Sequence record: PP456877.1
Strand: one strand, 5' to 3'
Length of the DNA: 64,000 nt
The translations under genes were made by a program, and so were the position numbers. Positions 7,160 to 13,578 of the stretch are shown in pieces. Position 1 is the first letter of the stretch, and each line of letters begins with the position of its first letter. The notes under the pieces were generated by a model, which saw nothing but the letters and a program-made list of their open reading frames with translations, was not told the origin of the DNA and did not search any database.

Positions 7160-7177
7160 GCCTCCCCAAAGGGAGGC
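7160..7177 (-). terminator. intrinsic terminator
   Basis: gcctccc-caaa-gggaggc after thyA. Confidence 0.85.
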
Positions 7178-7184
7178 ATTTATG

Positions 7185-8651
7185 TTAGACAGCAACTTTA
7201 CCAGCAATGTGTGAATGATATTCGTAGTTTTCGATAACAAAATCATCTACACCAATTTCCCGAATATCTTTACCAATAGCTTCTTGTTTGAAACGAATAG
7301 TTGGTAGAACCTTCGGTTCACGAGTTAATTGAAGATCAGTCTGTTCTTGGTGATTAGAGTAAATATGTACATCACCACCAGTCCAGATAAACTCTTCAGC
7401 AATCATATTCATTTGGTTAGCTAACATGTGAGTCAGCAGACTATAGAACGTGATGTTAAAGGGTTTTCCTAAGAAAGTATCACAAGATCTTTGATAGAGT
7501 TGACAACTGATGGCTCGTTTTGGAGCACCATGTTGATCCAGCCATTCTACTACTGCTTCATCTGTAGCCTTTTCATAACCACGACAGACACGCAGAAGTG
7601 CTTTAACCTGCTCAGCACTATCGAATGGAGGTTGACCACGAGTAATCTCACCACTAATCTTATCATGATAAGCATCAGCTTCGAACTGGGTTTGGTCTAG
7701 AGCTTGCACTCGTTCATCTACGGTCAGTTCACGGGTCCAGAACTGAATAAATGCGTGGCAAGGTGGGAGTGCCTGCTCATCAATAAGATGTGGCGCCCAT
7801 GCACAAACAATGATCCGACGAGAATCCGGGTTGGTGCGAAGTTGATCGATGATGTCTTGGATTTGGTCGATACGTCGAGTAACCACGCATCTATCGGTTT
7901 CCATGGTTGTACCTGGGATATCCGCCACGAAGTCAAAACCACGCTTCTCATAATCAAACCACTCATATTTAGGGATTACACGAGTGTCTTCAAGATTACG
8001 CCATGTCTTACCGTAAACAGCACCTAGATCGCCACCGACCAGACGCTCTGGTTCTTTATGCATCAAAGCACGATACAGTCGCTTGTTATATTCAGCACGA
8101 ATACCTTCAGGATTTTTGGCTTCATCGAACCCTTCAGTAGCGAACCTATTCCACGACGTTACGCTAACTCCAATGATGTATTGGATTTCCTCACGGTTAA
8201 CTGGATATTCATCCCAGAAGGCCTGAATAGTCTCTGGAGTCATACCCGACTCGAATTCCGCTACAGTCTCAATGAATGGAGTAGAGTCATCGTTCATACA
8301 ATGTAAGTACATTACGAATGGGGCACCAATGAGGGCAGTTACTGCTTTAAGAACGGCCTCATCGGTCATCGGCTCATATACTGCGGTTTCAGGTTTAACC
8401 CACTCGTTCCAGATGCGTACACCATTAGCGATCAGGTAATCCACCTTAGTATCACCTGACAGCATCCAGAACAATTCATGAATTACAGAAGCTAGATGAA
8501 TCTTCTTGGTGGTTACAACTGGTAGCCGATTATTACGCAGACTATAACGTTCTTGTTGACCAAACATGCTCTGAGTACCAGTACCAGTACGGTCACCTTT
8601 ATGTACACCGTGTTCTTTAACTAAACGGATTGAATTAAGATATTGTTCCAT
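7185..8651 (-). CDS. thyA: thymidylate synthase with large in-frame insertions
   Basis: GDRTGTGT, PVVTTKK, RIWNEW, GDLGAVYG, NPDSRRIIV, ALPPCH, YQRSCD, GDVHIYSNH. Confidence 0.97.
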   Translation of the reverse strand: MEQYLNSIRLVKEHGVHKGDRTGTGTQSMFGQQERYSLRNNRLPVVTTKKIHLASVIHELFWMLSGDTKVDYLIANGVRIWNEWVKPETAVYEPMTDEAVLKAVTALIGAPFVMYLHCMNDDSTPFIETVAEFESGMTPETIQAFWDEYPVNREEIQYIIGVSVTSWNRFATEGFDEAKNPEGIRAEYNKRLYRALMHKEPERLVGGDLGAVYGKTWRNLEDTRVIPKYEWFDYEKRGFDFVADIPGTTMETDRCVVTRRIDQIQDIIDQLRTNPDSRRIIVCAWAPHLIDEQALPPCHAFIQFWTRELTVDERVQALDQTQFEADAYHDKISGEITRGQPPFDSAEQVKALLRVCRGYEKATDEAVVEWLDQHGAPKRAISCQLYQRSCDTFLGKPFNITFYSLLTHMLANQMNMIAEEFIWTGGDVHIYSNHQEQTDLQLTREPKVLPTIRFKQEAIGKDIREIGVDDFVIENYEYHSHIAGKVAV

Positions 8652-8878: not shown

Positions 8879-9172
8879 TCATAGATCAACCTCTATCCGT
8901 TTGTATTTGATATTAACTGGAATACCTAATTCATTTTTTACAAGATTAAATGAGTTTTTCGATGGAGTGTATGTAGCAACTATAACGGCTTGACTATCAA
9001 CTACAGCTACATCTCGCCATTCCATGTGCATGTTATCGAAATCATCTTTACCCATGATCAAGTAATAAGACGTATCATTATGCGTAATGGTATTTTCAAA
9101 CGGTCTAATTACAAAAGCACTTAAACTAGACGGTATACGGTGTCCTACTTGTTCAAGTGTAACTGTATACAT
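8879..9172 (-). CDS. hypothetical protein
   Basis: 97 aa, GGAGG SD. Confidence 0.8.
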   Translation of the reverse strand: MYTVTLEQVGHRIPSSLSAFVIRPFENTITHNDTSYYLIMGKDDFDNMHMEWRDVAVVDSQAVIVATYTPSKNSFNLVKNELGIPVNIKYKRIEVDL

Positions 9173-9193
9173 AAAACCTCCTAGACGATATAC

Positions 9194-9213
9194 GGGAGTC
9201 CCGAAGGACTCCC
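9194..9213 (-). terminator. hairpin with cUUCGg loop, probable terminator
   Basis: gggagtcc-cgaa-ggactccc. Confidence 0.7.
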
Positions 9214-9277
9214 TAAGCGCAACTAACCAATCGGCTAGTATCTTACCTATATTATTAGTCTATCAGAAGTATTTTTA

Positions 9278-9985
9278 TTACAGACCAATACGAGTCAAAA
9301 TTTCAGCCCAACCTTTCTCTTTAGCATATCGCAATAGGCTATTTTCAATATGGGTTTCACTATAGACAATAGGTTCATGGCCACCTTGCACATGATACAT
9401 TGTTAATGGTTCCACCACATGTTGACTAGACCAAGCATCGTATAAACGATCATTGATTTTAATCACCACATATACCATCAATTTATCGTCGATGTCAAGA
9501 TCAATACCTGCTACAAATGCATTAACATTGGAACGCACTTGGTCAGCAGTTAGTTGCACTTGCAACCCGCCATGTACTTCAAATTCGATATTACAGATAT
9601 TCTTATTTAACCAAGTATACACTGCCTGATTAGCATATGTCTCAATTGGATCACTACTACGTAAATCTAATAATGGTCCATATGTTTCTAATGATGAGAC
9701 ACTGGTATCAACTAGGTCATTCAATGAGTATTCGGTACTAGAACAACTATCTAAAACACAGATAGTGTTATCCTCGATATGGATAGGTAATACCTTGAAT
9801 ACCACATTAGCAACATTAGGTAATGACGTATCTGGTTCAGAACTATTGAATGGAGTATAAAATAATCGATCAGCCACTTCAGTATCAATAGTTGATACAT
9901 CCATTGGAATGAATCCATTAAGATCTTGTTTGATTACGTCATTGTGTCCAATTCCAGAAAAAGATAAATACATTTTCTCAGACAT
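9278..9985 (-). CDS. hypothetical protein
   Basis: 235 aa ORF. Confidence 0.8.
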   Translation of the reverse strand: MSEKMYLSFSGIGHNDVIKQDLNGFIPMDVSTIDTEVADRLFYTPFNSSEPDTSLPNVANVVFKVLPIHIEDNTICVLDSCSSTEYSLNDLVDTSVSSLETYGPLLDLRSSDPIETYANQAVYTWLNKNICNIEFEVHGGLQVQLTADQVRSNVNAFVAGIDLDIDDKLMVYVVIKINDRLYDAWSSQHVVEPLTMYHVQGGHEPIVYSETHIENSLLRYAKEKGWAEILTRIGL

Positions 9986-9993
9986 ATCCGTAC

Positions 9994-10251
9994 CTATTTA
10001 TTTACACAGATTAGAGTATGTTCTACTTTACTAGTACTAGAAGAAAAATAACGTAATAGAACACCATCACTGATTTTTACAGTCTCTACATTATTACGAA
10101 TAGCACTTGCTTTAGCTAGTTTTTGAATGCGCTCAATCGCGCTAAAACAAGTAGCCATGTCAGAGAACTCAGCGGTTGACTGCGATGCACCATTGGCTTG
10201 ATAACCAGCGATACTGATACTACTAAAAAGAATTGCTAAAGTTGCATTCAT
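9994..10251 (-). CDS. small exported protein
   Basis: N-terminal hydrophobic signal-like segment; two Cys in the mature part. Confidence 0.7.
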   Translation of the reverse strand: MNATLAILFSSISIAGYQANGASQSTAEFSDMATCFSAIERIQKLAKASAIRNNVETVKISDGVLLRYFSSSTSKVEHTLICVNK

Positions 10252-11156
10252 TTCTTACCACCTTTAATAACAGTGAGTTTTGGTGTACCGGTAGGACGAG
10301 AAGGTTTATTAATAATAACCTGCGAATTGGAAGAATTATTGAAATCCTCAACCATCTTATTTACATCATTGTCAAATGAATTAGATGTATTATCACCCGA
10401 GTCCACAGTTGATTCACTAACCACATTTGAAATAGGGTAACTGAGGAGTTCCATCATAAGTACATTGATGTTATCCTGATAGTTTTCATTACGTGTACAA
10501 TTAATAACCCGCTCACACCAATCCATAATTAATTCTGGTGCATTCTGTTTAATTACAGTTACCGCTACTCTAATATGTGCATCTAATTCTGGATTACTAA
10601 ATTCAGTTACTCTGTTAATGGCGCTTTCAATCATCTGATCATGCTCATTCTCAGATGTATTCCTTACAACTAACTTACCATTAGTGGTATCGGCTTTATT
10701 TTTAAAATTAACCTCAGTGACATTACCTACGGTAGTTAATACTGGGTTTTTGTCAACTACATTATTAACAGTTCCTTCTAATGTTGCACGAATAGTATCT
10801 GCATTGAGATATCTATCTACTAGTGGCATTTCAAAGAATGCGTTAGAATTATCATCAATAGGTGTAACTACACCCAATACTGCATAAAGAGGAAGTTTAA
10901 TACTGACCCCAACTCCATTTACTGTTACATTGAAAGAGATATATTCGTCACTGATATAAAAATTCTTTGCACAGCGTGGATGGATATTGAAAGTGATAGT
11001 GTGATCTTCTTTCGCATGCTTTAGAGCTACCTCAGATAAATCAGGTACTAATTGAGTATGTGCTACAATTAGAATATCTCTGAAGTTATTCTCAAGAAAC
11101 CAATCATAGGTAGCTCGAAGAATATGGCCAGTGAGTAATGATTTTACCTTTAGCAT
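10248..11156 (-). CDS. sspB: SspB-like ClpXP protease adaptor
   Basis: ILRATYDWFLEN, ITFNIHPRCAKNF, ISFNVTVNG, LPLYAVLGV match E. coli SspB YLLRAFYEWLLDN, IVLNIAPRAVGNL, VRFNARFGG, VPLAAVLAI; C-terminal PKLTVIK resembles PALRVVK. Confidence 0.8.
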   Translation of the reverse strand: MLKVKSLLTGHILRATYDWFLENNFRDILIVAHTQLVPDLSEVALKHAKEDHTITFNIHPRCAKNFYISDEYISFNVTVNGVGVSIKLPLYAVLGVVTPIDDNSNAFFEMPLVDRYLNADTIRATLEGTVNNVVDKNPVLTTVGNVTEVNFKNKADTTNGKLVVRNTSENEHDQMIESAINRVTEFSNPELDAHIRVAVTVIKQNAPELIMDWCERVINCTRNENYQDNINVLMMELLSYPISNVVSESTVDSGDNTSNSFDNDVNKMVEDFNNSSNSQVIINKPSRPTGTPKLTVIKGGKK

Positions 11157-11178
11157 ATTTGTATTACCTTTAAATAAA

Positions 11179-11646
11179 TTATAGGAAGATATCTTCTACT
11201 GAGGGCACTATATTCTTTTCTTTTACAAGTTCAGTAGATTTGGTATAATGTGCATTAAATAGTTTCTTTAAATCTGCTTTTTCATATTTTACAGTATCTG
11301 CTAATTTCCAAATAGTAAGACCTAGATGAATACTAACTGAATTAACATGTTTTACGCATAGATCAATTAATTTGTTAAACTCTTCTAATTCATTTTTAAT
11401 CAACGTTGCATCTAAAGCTTGGTGCAAACGATTAGATAATTTAACTTTATCTTTGTCAATTGTAAAGTTATTTTCAATATCCTTAGCACTCATCGGTGGT
11501 TCAACTTTATACCACACATTGGTTAGTTTACCGTCCACACGCGTCGTGATGGGATGTTTATAATCAGTCCAACTTCTATGTAGATTATGTTTATCATCAA
11601 GAACATCTACAGTAACTTTCTCATTACCTGTAAAGAATGGATACAT
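11179..11646 (-). CDS. hypothetical protein
   Basis: 155 aa ORF. Confidence 0.8.
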   Translation of the reverse strand: MYPFFTGNEKVTVDVLDDKHNLHRSWTDYKHPITTRVDGKLTNVWYKVEPPMSAKDIENNFTIDKDKVKLSNRLHQALDATLIKNELEEFNKLIDLCVKHVNSVSIHLGLTIWKLADTVKYEKADLKKLFNAHYTKSTELVKEKNIVPSVEDIFL

Positions 11647-11819
11647 TAGGTTGCCTTTATTTTATCAATGAGTAATTTTAATAGTTCATCATTAGTTAAA
11701 TTGTCTTTATTTTTAATAATGTCTTTTAGTTTAAACATATTGAAAGTATACCACAACCACTTATGAATTATATAACAAATCACTATAACTAATAATAGTA
11801 GTGAATGTAATGCTAGCAT
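11646..11819 (-). CDS. 57 aa membrane protein (not in ORF track)
   Basis: MLALHSLLLLVIVICYIIHKWLW...; TAATG overlap with the next gene; first ORF after promoter 11856. Confidence 0.7.
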   Translation of the reverse strand: MLALHSLLLLVIVICYIIHKWLWYTFNMFKLKDIIKNKDNLTNDELLKLLIDKIKAT

Positions 11820-11855
11820 TATAACTACCTATTTTGATATGACTTGACCAAATAT

Positions 11856-11863
11856 GTAATATA
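11856..11863 (-). promoter_or_regulatory. early promoter core TATATTAC
   Basis: exact motif within cassette. Confidence 0.75.
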
Positions 11864-11890
11864 GATTTCAAAAAAAATTTAATGCAATAA

Positions 11891-11912
11891 AGGAGAGCTA
11901 AATAGCTCTCCT
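11891..11912 (-). terminator. intrinsic terminator
   Basis: aggagagcta-aa-tagctctcct. Confidence 0.8.
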
Positions 11913-11920
11913 ATTTATGC

Positions 11921-12211
11921 TTATTTATTTTTCTTTCTTGACTTATCTTTAATAACTAAGTCTAATGCTTCAAACATTTTAACAGCAGTTAAATGGTCGA
12001 TAGAGTATGCCTTTTTACGTAAACGTCCAATAGCTACTGTATACTGGTATTCAGATAAACCATCACTCATATTGTCAATAATTGATAGTGCTTCTTTATA
12101 AAGCCTGTTACACTTTATCGTGTGTTTGATGGCATAATAACCCCAGTTAATTAAAGCCATCATTATAATCAGAAACAAAATACCTATAATTACTGTCATG
12201 ATATCATTCAT
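11921..12211 (-). CDS. single-pass membrane protein (paralog A)
   Basis: N-terminal TM VIIGILFLIIMMALINW. Confidence 0.8.
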   Translation of the reverse strand: MNDIMTVIIGILFLIIMMALINWGYYAIKHTIKCNRLYKEALSIIDNMSDGLSEYQYTVAIGRLRKKAYSIDHLTAVKMFEALDLVIKDKSRKKNK

Positions 12212-12521
12212 TTGCTGTTTCCCTATTATTACATTTTAATATAATCAATGAGTTGATATCGTAAATAAAAGATGTAAAAATATGTTGATTTGTTATTTTA
12301 GATGATTCTTTATCTATAATGTCTTGGACAGCATTTTGATAGAAAAAATAACTTATGCCATTGGGCATTTTATCTAATACATATCTAACCTTATAAACAC
12401 CCATCCAGTGAATATAATGATTTTTTATATTAATAATGAAAGTTACACATGTTGATATAGCCGTTAGTGTTATCATTGATATAACAAATACTTTATACAT
12501 TTGCAACCCACAGATTCTCAT
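12204..12521 (-). CDS. single-pass membrane protein (paralog B)
   Basis: TM VFVISMITLTAISTCVTFII; shares YK..(I/V)(I/L)D.M..G(L/I)S...Y..A with paralog A. Confidence 0.75.
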   Translation of the reverse strand: MRICGLQMYKVFVISMITLTAISTCVTFIINIKNHYIHWMGVYKVRYVLDKMPNGISYFFYQNAVQDIIDKESSKITNQHIFTSFIYDINSLIILKCNNRETANE

Positions 12522-12534
12522 CTAGATGAAATAA

Positions 12535-12554
12535 ACCAGCCCCGAAGGGCTGGT
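12535..12554 (-). terminator. intrinsic terminator, cUUCGg loop
   Basis: accagccc-cgaa-gggctggt. Confidence 0.85.
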
Positions 12555-12556
12555 AT

Positions 12557-12925
12557 TTATTTTACAACCACAGCTTTACCGTAGTTGTTATCCATACAGG
12601 TTTTAAATGATGTAACGTATGCATCACGTGGGCTTTGTCTACGTGAATACACAACGTGCACCTCTTTAATTGCTGCTGGGAGAACATTGTAAAGAACGTT
12701 ATCTTTGTTCTTCACGCCGTACCCTTTTAGGGATCGTAGGTTTTCTTCCCATTGTAAAATGGGTGTTTTACGCTGACGTGCTTCTGCTGTGGCATGTGCT
12801 ATAAGTGCAACACCATTACAGTAATTCTCGTCAACTACCAACGATGCAGCTAGTGGGTTTGATACGTATAACAACGTACTTAATACGGCCACTAACTTCA
12901 TTACGTGTGTTAAACATTGCATCAC
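12557..12925 (-). CDS. exported protein with signal peptide
   Basis: MKLVAVLSTLLYVSNPLAA signal-like segment; Cys pair. Confidence 0.75.
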   Translation of the reverse strand: MMQCLTHVMKLVAVLSTLLYVSNPLAASLVVDENYCNGVALIAHATAEARQRKTPILQWEENLRSLKGYGVKNKDNVLYNVLPAAIKEVHVVYSRRQSPRDAYVTSFKTCMDNNYGKAVVVK

Positions 12926-12978
12926 GTTGTACCTAGGTTGCTAAGATCAGAATATAAAGCTACTAAAATAGCCTTAAA

Positions 12979-13578
12979 TCATTCTACAACCTTAACGTTA
13001 CCATCTTCAATAACTAGATCTTTACCTACAACATCGGCAAGATCTAACTTATCTTTTACTTCCAGTTTCTTGATACTGTGTACAAAACGGAATACAGATA
13101 GACGAAGAATTAGTTCTTCTGGTACATCAACAACATCAATAAAGTATTCTGATGGGTTGATATCACAATTGACATATTCCCAACTTTGTCTTAGTTCAGT
13201 TTCATTCTCAGTTACTTGTGCATCAAGAACTTCTTCAAAGTTAATATTGGCAATATTAGTATCATTATCATTCAGATAAGTAAATTGAAGACTAGCATTA
13301 TTAATGAATTCTTCTTCAACTACAGTTAGTGCACGTTGAGCGTGAATGGGCAGATGATATCGAATACACCCATTAATAATAACCTCATTTGCCTTTTCAA
13401 TATAACGTTCTTCTTTGAATTTTACATTAGATACGACGTAATCTAGGATTGCCTTGTAATATTCTTTATGATCTGGGTGGCTCTTTTCAATCCACTGTCG
13501 GCTACTTACGCTAATTTTTTTCTCGGCTAGAAAATCTCGGAATTTAGCACGATCGATATAAGCGGTACGTTTTTTCAT
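12979..13578 (-). CDS. hypothetical protein
   Basis: 199 aa ORF. Confidence 0.8.
   Translation of the reverse strand: MKKRTAYIDRAKFRDFLAEKKISVSSRQWIEKSHPDHKEYYKAILDYVVSNVKFKEERYIEKANEVIINGCIRYHLPIHAQRALTVVEEEFINNASLQFTYLNDNDTNIANINFEEVLDAQVTENETELRQSWEYVNCDINPSEYFIDVVDVPEELILRLSVFRFVHSIKKLEVKDKLDLADVVGKDLVIEDGNVKVVE

Follow-up and report, generated by a model that had tools for sequence, protein, structure and literature searches.

What does a jumbo phage do with a protein that combines an SspB-like domain with a tail resembling the peptide by which SspB docks on ClpX? The question is raised by gp232 (PHIKZ232), which is encoded at positions 10248–11156 (minus strand) of the stretch of 64,000 nucleotides analysed here (the window). 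The gene is intact, begins with ATG and encodes 302 amino acids followed by a stop codon. The encoded protein matches PHIKZ232 of phage phiKZ, and its counterparts in many phiKZ-like phages, at 100% identity. The identity of bases 9000–13000 is 100% to Pseudomonas phage vB_Pae3705-KEN49 and 99.7% to phiKZ, which places the stretch in a nucleus-forming P. aeruginosa jumbo phage of the phiKZ type. In such phages the DNA is shielded, while cytoplasmic proteins and mRNAs are still exposed to the host. The SspB of P. aeruginosa, a protein of 135 amino acids, binds ClpX via tail residues 128–135 and bridges the AlgU–MucA complex to ClpXP (PMC13251409).

The RefSeq label for the phiKZ copy is PHIKZ232 only, with no functional name. 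The likeness to SspB is, however, already present in public annotation: the phiKZ-like records Bobae and Churi name the gp232 match ‘stringent starvation protein B’, PhiPA3 gp270 carries a similarity note, and PHROG 8945 and RAY gp039 are annotated in the same sense, while a 2017 paper described pf16 gp18 as a phage SspB (PMC5587285). Within this known phage SspB-like family gp232 represents a long-form variant. The present analysis adds the long-form subfamily, its anchor made of an XB motif plus GG[KR], a second motif, a phiKZ-specific helical insert and the measurement of the anchor as the most constrained part of the protein. In the record of the phiKZ-like phage U5 (MT995928.1) the feature under the gp232 match is labelled ‘HNH homing endonuclease’, which is either a mis-annotation or refers to an adjacent or overlapping feature.

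The gene lies within a long series of genes on the same strand, its stop codon overlaps the start of the next open reading frame, and terminator-like hairpins on its strand are found at 12535–12554 and 7160–7177. From this arrangement gp232 is probably co-transcribed with the thymidylate synthase gene located downstream (7185–8651, minus strand). Placement upstream of thymidylate synthase is common to phiKZ, PhiPA3, Phabio and the P0007 contigs. A dRNA-seq paper does not mention the gp232 gene, and ARAGORN finds no tRNA or tmRNA genes in the window (1–64000).

The thymidylate synthase of the window is unusually long, 488 amino acids as against 376 on the P0007 contigs, and on the contigs that carry another SspB-like gene, P0094, the Thymidylat_synt matches are split over two open reading frames with a 160-amino-acid frame between them (L019, 9566–11598). 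Jumbo-phage copies of this gene may contain insertions or mobile elements. The 85-codon open reading frame that begins on the gp232 stop codon (9994–10251, minus strand) has a hydrophobic, signal-peptide-like N-terminus; it is intact in the window, while in the phiKZ RefSeq record one in-frame stop leaves two small frames, 232.1 and 232.2. This frame has no Pfam match, nor do gp231, gp233 and gp234, and gp233 is without similarity to the gene downstream of the Psa21 SspB-like gene. The order in D6, Psa21 and RVTF4 is the SspB-like gene, a gene for ~225–240 amino acids and then one for a BCS1-like AAA+ ATPase (Pfam AAA and BCS1_N). The BCS1-like homolog of phiKZ-like phages lies ~30 kb from the SspB-like gene and is recovered by tblastn in two pieces.

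The SspB-like domain and its groove

The substrate-binding domain comprises residues 1–112 (10821–11156, minus strand) and consists of an N-terminal helix (residues 8–22) and a β-sandwich. When compared with the PDB by phmmer, residues 11–110 match E. coli SspB with an E-value of 1.4e-8 and the H. influenzae homolog with 2.9e-8, and the domain matches the NCBIfam model NF008762 with an E-value of 3.9e-13. The scores remain below the curated cut-offs, with a best NCBIfam score of 49.7 bits against a cut-off of 202 bits and a Pfam PF04386 match of 23.5 bits (E 6.1e-5) against a gathering score of 27 bits. The protein is thus significantly homologous to bacterial SspB without being its equivalog.

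The AlphaFold2 model of gp232, calculated from a 66-sequence alignment, has pLDDT values above 90 across the SspB-like domain (about residues 11–120). A Foldseek search of the PDB with this model returns SspB structures as its best 13 matches, with E-values of 8e-9 to 2e-7, target-normalised TM-scores of 0.74–0.83 and rmsd of 2.5–3.7 Å, and a viral structure library contains ~20 phage proteins with the SspB fold, several of which are already named SspB. As modelled, residues 1–112 are shown to have the SspB substrate-binding fold. The assignment of the N-terminal ~110 amino acids to an SspB core in the earlier note is borne out by phmmer, NCBIfam and Foldseek, and a structure search does find the SspB fold in this protein.

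The groove appears to be preserved in part. At 39 reference columns, each at least 60% conserved in the SspB-family set analysed, gp232 is identical at 19 and similar at 23. The residues W19, N23, N57, F75, G81, P89 and F107, which belong to the scaffold, are kept, while 20 of the 39 columns differ, several of them being 75–93% conserved in the family, and the conserved A-R-F triplet reads V-T-V. Good conservation within SspB is limited to the dimer interface and the ssrA groove (PMC9963277). Judged from these columns, binding of the ssrA tag by gp232 is doubtful. With only about half of the conserved columns kept, the cargo is more likely to be a protein chosen by the phage than the ssrA tag.

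The tail, the tether and the distribution of constraint

The C-terminus of gp232, PSRPTGTPKLTVIKGGKK, reads exactly as the earlier note had quoted it, and its likeness to the XB motif of E. coli SspB, on which that note had built, is more than chance. It was scored on a tail matrix of 10 columns derived from 57 SspB-family tails. Residues 289–298 reach 12.5 bits, a value attained by none of the 18,900 other 10-residue windows in the open reading frames of the 64-kb window, where the maximum is 7.4. The core of the match, PKLTVIK (residues 292–298; 10263–10283, minus strand), is the putative docking peptide for the ClpX N-domain. E. coli SspB, whose sequence was taken from an E. coli RefSeq record reached from a metagenomic sspA-sspB contig, ends in RPALRVVK and scores 21.1 bits with its own, experimentally defined tail; the counterpart in gp232 is TPKLTVIK, followed by GGKK. 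In comparisons E. coli SspB and pf16 gp18 stand in for the P. aeruginosa protein, pf16 gp18 being highly similar to P. putida SspB and a near copy of that of its host (PMC5587285). The SspB family ranges from 7.6 to 28.2 bits on a near-identical 58-tail version of the matrix, and gp232 lies low in this range because T-G-T stands where basic K/R residues usually precede the proline. The tails of PA1C (24.0 bits), PhiPA3 (24.7 bits) and P0007 (21.2 bits) score as high as that of E. coli SspB. In 6 of 25 relatives the key leucine of the XB motif is replaced by tryptophan.

The GGKK extension (residues 299–302; 10251–10262, minus strand) is not a peculiarity of gp232. An SspB-like domain, an XB-like core and a C-terminal GG[KR] occur together in 24 of 25 distinct phage-type relatives, gp232 included, and across them GG[KR] is more invariant than the leucine of the core. 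The XB motif binds the ClpX N-domain at any position in a polypeptide (PMC12373786), so that residues following it are consistent with docking. That they are so conserved requires another explanation, and the near-invariant GG[KR] is unexplained by the XB/ClpX model. In IMG/VR the exact tail with its stop codon is found in phage PA7 itself only, while a scan with a looser protein pattern gave 5 confirmed loci.

In 20 of 25 long-form relatives the XB-like core is preceded, at a distance of ~20 residues, by a second motif, PLL[DNE]F, which usually has a glycine after it. At the aligned position gp232 and its metagenomic relative P0002 have the degenerate form MVEDF, which in gp232 occupies residues 268–272 (10341–10355) within a short helix (264–273; 10338–10367, minus strand) and is followed by a disordered tail. 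PLL[DNE]F loosely resembles a degenerate XB motif, with P-x-L and then a hydrophobic residue. Additional internal XB-like strings are present in PA1C, at residues 221–230 directly before PLLDF (14.2 bits), and in Phabio, at residues 152–161 (9.1 bits), and their sequence suggests tandem docking peptides in these two proteins.

Between the domain and the anchor lies a long tether. The earlier note had described an extra ~170 amino acids, partly helical and partly rich in Asn, Ser and Asp. Its description of the composition agrees with the AlphaFold2 model and with the S+N+D+T fraction, although the size has to be corrected to 190 amino acids (residues 113–302). A linker (residues 113–166; 10659–10820, minus strand) starts with two short helices and continues in segments modelled with low confidence (127–166). 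It leads into a four-helix domain (residues 167–240, with helices spanning 169–238; 10437–10658, minus strand), which is modelled with pLDDT values of 85–93 and is found in phiKZ-like phages only. A disordered stretch rich in Ser, Asn, Asp and Thr follows (residues 241–263; 10368–10436, minus strand), with an S+N+D+T fraction of 0.65 and pLDDT values below 50 at 244–260. The disorder of the tether, at 127–166 and 241–263, is thus broken up by a confidently predicted helical domain, and a separate model of residues 160–302 contains the same helices.

No relative of the middle region was found outside the phiKZ-like phages by HMMER among 1.84 billion representatives, and no fold relative of the four-helix domain by Foldseek in the PDB (best E 0.58). 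Residues 113–302 have no accepted relative in the PDB by phmmer, and the same search with the last 25 residues found nothing. The middle is also the fastest-evolving part of the protein, with 44–54% identity to P0002, and the 6 positions at which gp232 differs from P0001, a variant with 98% identity, all lie in the part from the linker to the Ser/Asn/Asp-rich stretch. The tether thus contains in its middle an insert that is specific to one lineage and changes fast, and that may have a role in binding. That it constitutes a new substrate-recognition module, as had been proposed, gains no positive support from a region that is restricted to phiKZ-like phages, has no relative and evolves fastest. 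A folded four-helix domain is nevertheless present there and might have such a role.

Some matches within the tether were rejected. The staphylococcal superantigen-like protein SSL7 matches residues 129–198 (10563–10772, minus strand) with a PDB E-value of 0.002, but with 26 bits against a cut-off of 313, and the match is judged to be compositional; in the AlphaFold2 model this low-complexity linker shows a low-confidence hairpin and a helix, with no OB or β-grasp fold. A weak match of residues 115–195 to Fur is far below the cut-offs, falls in the same low-complexity linker and has no corresponding fold in the model. The NCBIfam and MAFFT alignments place the C-terminus of the SspB family within the gp232 linker, at residues 135–144. 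A possible XB remnant there scores 2.1 bits, and with ~0.2 such windows expected per protein it is not significant alone.

In the HMMER search gp232 has 89 relatives. Most of these are SspB-family proteins of 125–183 amino acids, largely metagenomic, which end in [KR]-P-x-L-[KRT]-[VIL]-[VI]-K. Full-length relatives are confined to phiKZ-like phages, with the single addition of P0002, which is 61% identical to gp232. The identity between these two proteins is unevenly distributed, with 77% in the SspB domain, 54% in the linker, 45% in the helical part and 44% in the Ser/Asn/Asp-rich part, rising to 90% over the last 39 residues and 92% over the last 25. More distant long forms of 196–265 amino acids, with an alignment-wide identity of 20–26%, are encoded by PhiPA3 (gp270), PA1C, Psa21, D6, RVTF4 and metagenomic jumbo-phage contigs, and further SspB-like proteins that share the tail occur in Serratia and other phages.

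Nine divergent long forms have 10 invariant columns, of which 6 lie in the last 16 residues (R287, P292, L294, I297, G299 and G300), and the last 11 residues of gp232 and of PA1C, both proteins of P. aeruginosa phages, are identical at an alignment-wide identity of 23–26%. On these alignments, conservation across very divergent jumbo-phage relatives is shown to be highest in the tail and in the motif ~20 residues upstream. The SspB-like domain is retained in all deep phage subgroups, and its identity to gp232 there is no higher than that of bacterial-type SspBs, which is about 29%. The P0094 gene, which encodes an SspB-like protein of 140 amino acids on jumbo-phage-like contigs of 207–241 kb, lies upstream of thymidylate synthase and carries a canonical XB motif at its very C-terminus. 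In the light of this synteny and this plain canonical tail, the long-form tail is most simply seen as a descendant of an ordinary XB tail.

The probable docking partner of the tail

The data support the view that gp232 is an SspB-fold protein with an XB-type tail, and that this tail is more strongly constrained than the remaining protein. The most probable explanation, held with moderate confidence, is that gp232 acts in the cytoplasm as a long-form adaptor, which is anchored through residues 292–298 to the N-domain of ClpX, brings cargo held by its SspB-like domain to ClpXP and competes with host SspB. The tail would dock on the zinc-binding N-domain of host ClpX, like the tails of E. coli and P. 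aeruginosa SspB, and the SspB-like domain, probably as a dimer, would hold a peptide of the cargo. The 180-residue tether with its four-helix insert would keep the cargo near the ClpX pore, leading to its degradation by host ClpXP. Such docking would necessarily compete with host SspB and with other clients that depend on the N-domain. A cytoplasmic site fits the observations that gp232 was one of six proteins fused to mNeonGreen, most of which were diffuse outside the phage shell (PMC10449902), and that its homolog RAY gp039 is cytoplasmic (PMC10299810). Functional tests of a phage SspB-like protein, for binding or degradation, were not found in the literature searched. Several observations count against this explanation, namely the missing basic residues before the motif, where T-G-T replaces K/R, the unexplained GG[KR] and the tryptophan in place of leucine in 6 of 25 relatives, the failure to reach curated cut-offs with 19 of 39 columns kept, and the behaviour of the protein in cell fractions. 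The gp232 protein was detected in infected cells, where it is enriched in the shell fraction analysed by SEC-MS, and is absent from virions (PMC10449902), and this enrichment hints at another partner.

It is rather unlikely that gp232 docks on ClpX N-domains, bivalently if it is a dimer, and delivers nothing, so that host SspB and other adaptors or substrates are shut out. Phage proteins would then be protected, or host stress signalling blunted, for example the SspB-dependent turnover of MucA. Such a blocker would fit a protein in which the tail is the most conserved part and only half of the groove-forming columns are kept, in a host whose own SspB occupies this site with a tail of the same type (PMC13251409). 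However, a short peptide would suffice for blocking, whereas the identity in the SspB fold holds at 77% while that of the middle falls to 45%, and the fold persists in every deep phage subgroup, which avidity through dimerisation could account for in part. Quite improbable in our view is docking of the tail on a partner other than ClpX, for instance the phage BCS1-like AAA+ ATPase or the shell of the phage nucleus, with GG[KR] and PLLDF as the real recognition elements. The shell-enriched SEC-MS fraction (PMC10449902) points in this direction, as do the conservation of GG[KR] in 24 of 25 relatives beyond that of the XB leucine, the position of the SspB-like gene two genes upstream of the BCS1-like gene in D6, Psa21 and RVTF4 and the presence of a BCS1-like homolog ~30 kb away in phiKZ-like phages. 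Against it, the tails of several relatives fit the XB matrix as well as that of E. coli SspB, the short syntenic phage form has a plain canonical tail, and BCS1-like ATPases are common in jumbo phages whether or not SspB-like genes are present. Moreover, the mNeonGreen fusion of gp232 did not mark the shell (PMC10449902).

The kept fold and scaffold residues might also indicate an ordinary ssrA-tag adaptor, by which gp232 would boost the clearance of tmRNA-tagged proteins during infection. This appears very improbable, as the parts conserved in SspB are the dimer interface and the ssrA groove (PMC9963277), 20 of the 39 conserved columns differ in gp232, several of them at positions conserved at 75–93%, and the host already has an SspB of its own.

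If gp232 does act as an adaptor for ClpXP, the host protease would allow the phage to dispose of selected host proteins, or to safeguard its own, without encoding a protease itself. A more far-reaching proposal is that the long-form SspB-like proteins of nucleus-forming jumbo phages are natural devices for targeted degradation. Each would combine an invariant anchor for host ClpX (the XB motif and GG[KR], to which PLLDF perhaps adds a second contact) with parts that bind cargo and diverge fast (the remodelled groove and, in phiKZ, the four-helix domain), and each lineage would thereby direct a different host protein of the cytoplasm, for instance one involved in defence or the stress response, to the host protease. 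This proposal is speculative and, taken as a whole, unlikely. The near-invariant anchor amid a diverging remainder could help to recognise such proteins in other phages. The practical gain is modest for now, and consists of a better annotation of a hypothetical phiKZ gene and of a subfamily with two diagnostic motifs.

Comparison with known systems

Bacterial SspB (E. coli and H. influenzae structures with the PDB codes 1OX9, 1OU9, 1YFN and 8ET3) shares with gp232 the fold of the N-terminal domain, at the target-normalised TM-scores of 0.74–0.83 given above, and the order of a folded domain, a tether, which in gp232 is predicted to be flexible in part, and a C-terminal motif of the docking type, P-x-L-x-V-[VI]-K. 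The sequence identity is ~29%, and gp232, with 19 of 39 conserved columns kept, stays below the curated cut-offs. From the aligned domain to the motif, the tether measures 180 residues in gp232 and contains a folded four-helix insert, as opposed to roughly 45 residues in E. coli SspB. Bacterial SspB ends at the motif, while gp232 adds GGKK and lacks basic residues before the motif. The Caulobacter SspB ortholog (PDB codes 2QAS and 2QAZ) is a more distant and weaker fold match, with E-values of 0.015–0.045 and target-normalised TM-scores of 0.47–0.62.

The long-form SspB-like proteins of other jumbo phages (PhiPA3 gp270, PA1C, Psa21, D6, RVTF4 and the metagenomic P0007–P0111) have the same organization as gp232, with an SspB-like domain, a variable middle and an XB-like core followed by GG[KR]. 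They are shorter, with 196–265 amino acids, lack the phiKZ four-helix insert and have PLLDF or PLLNF where gp232 has MVEDF. The short phage proteins P0094, pf16 gp18 and RAY gp039 are likewise phage-encoded SspB folds, and the first two end in a canonical XB motif; unlike gp232, they have the length of bacterial SspB (128–140 amino acids), no insert and no GG[KR] extension.

The closest parallel to the mechanism proposed for gp232 is engineered. In the XB-fusion degraders called CLIPPERs, an XB peptide joined to a target-binding module suffices to send an untagged protein to ClpXP (PMC12373786). These are synthetic peptides and contain no SspB domain; if the proposed mechanism is true, gp232 would be their natural counterpart.
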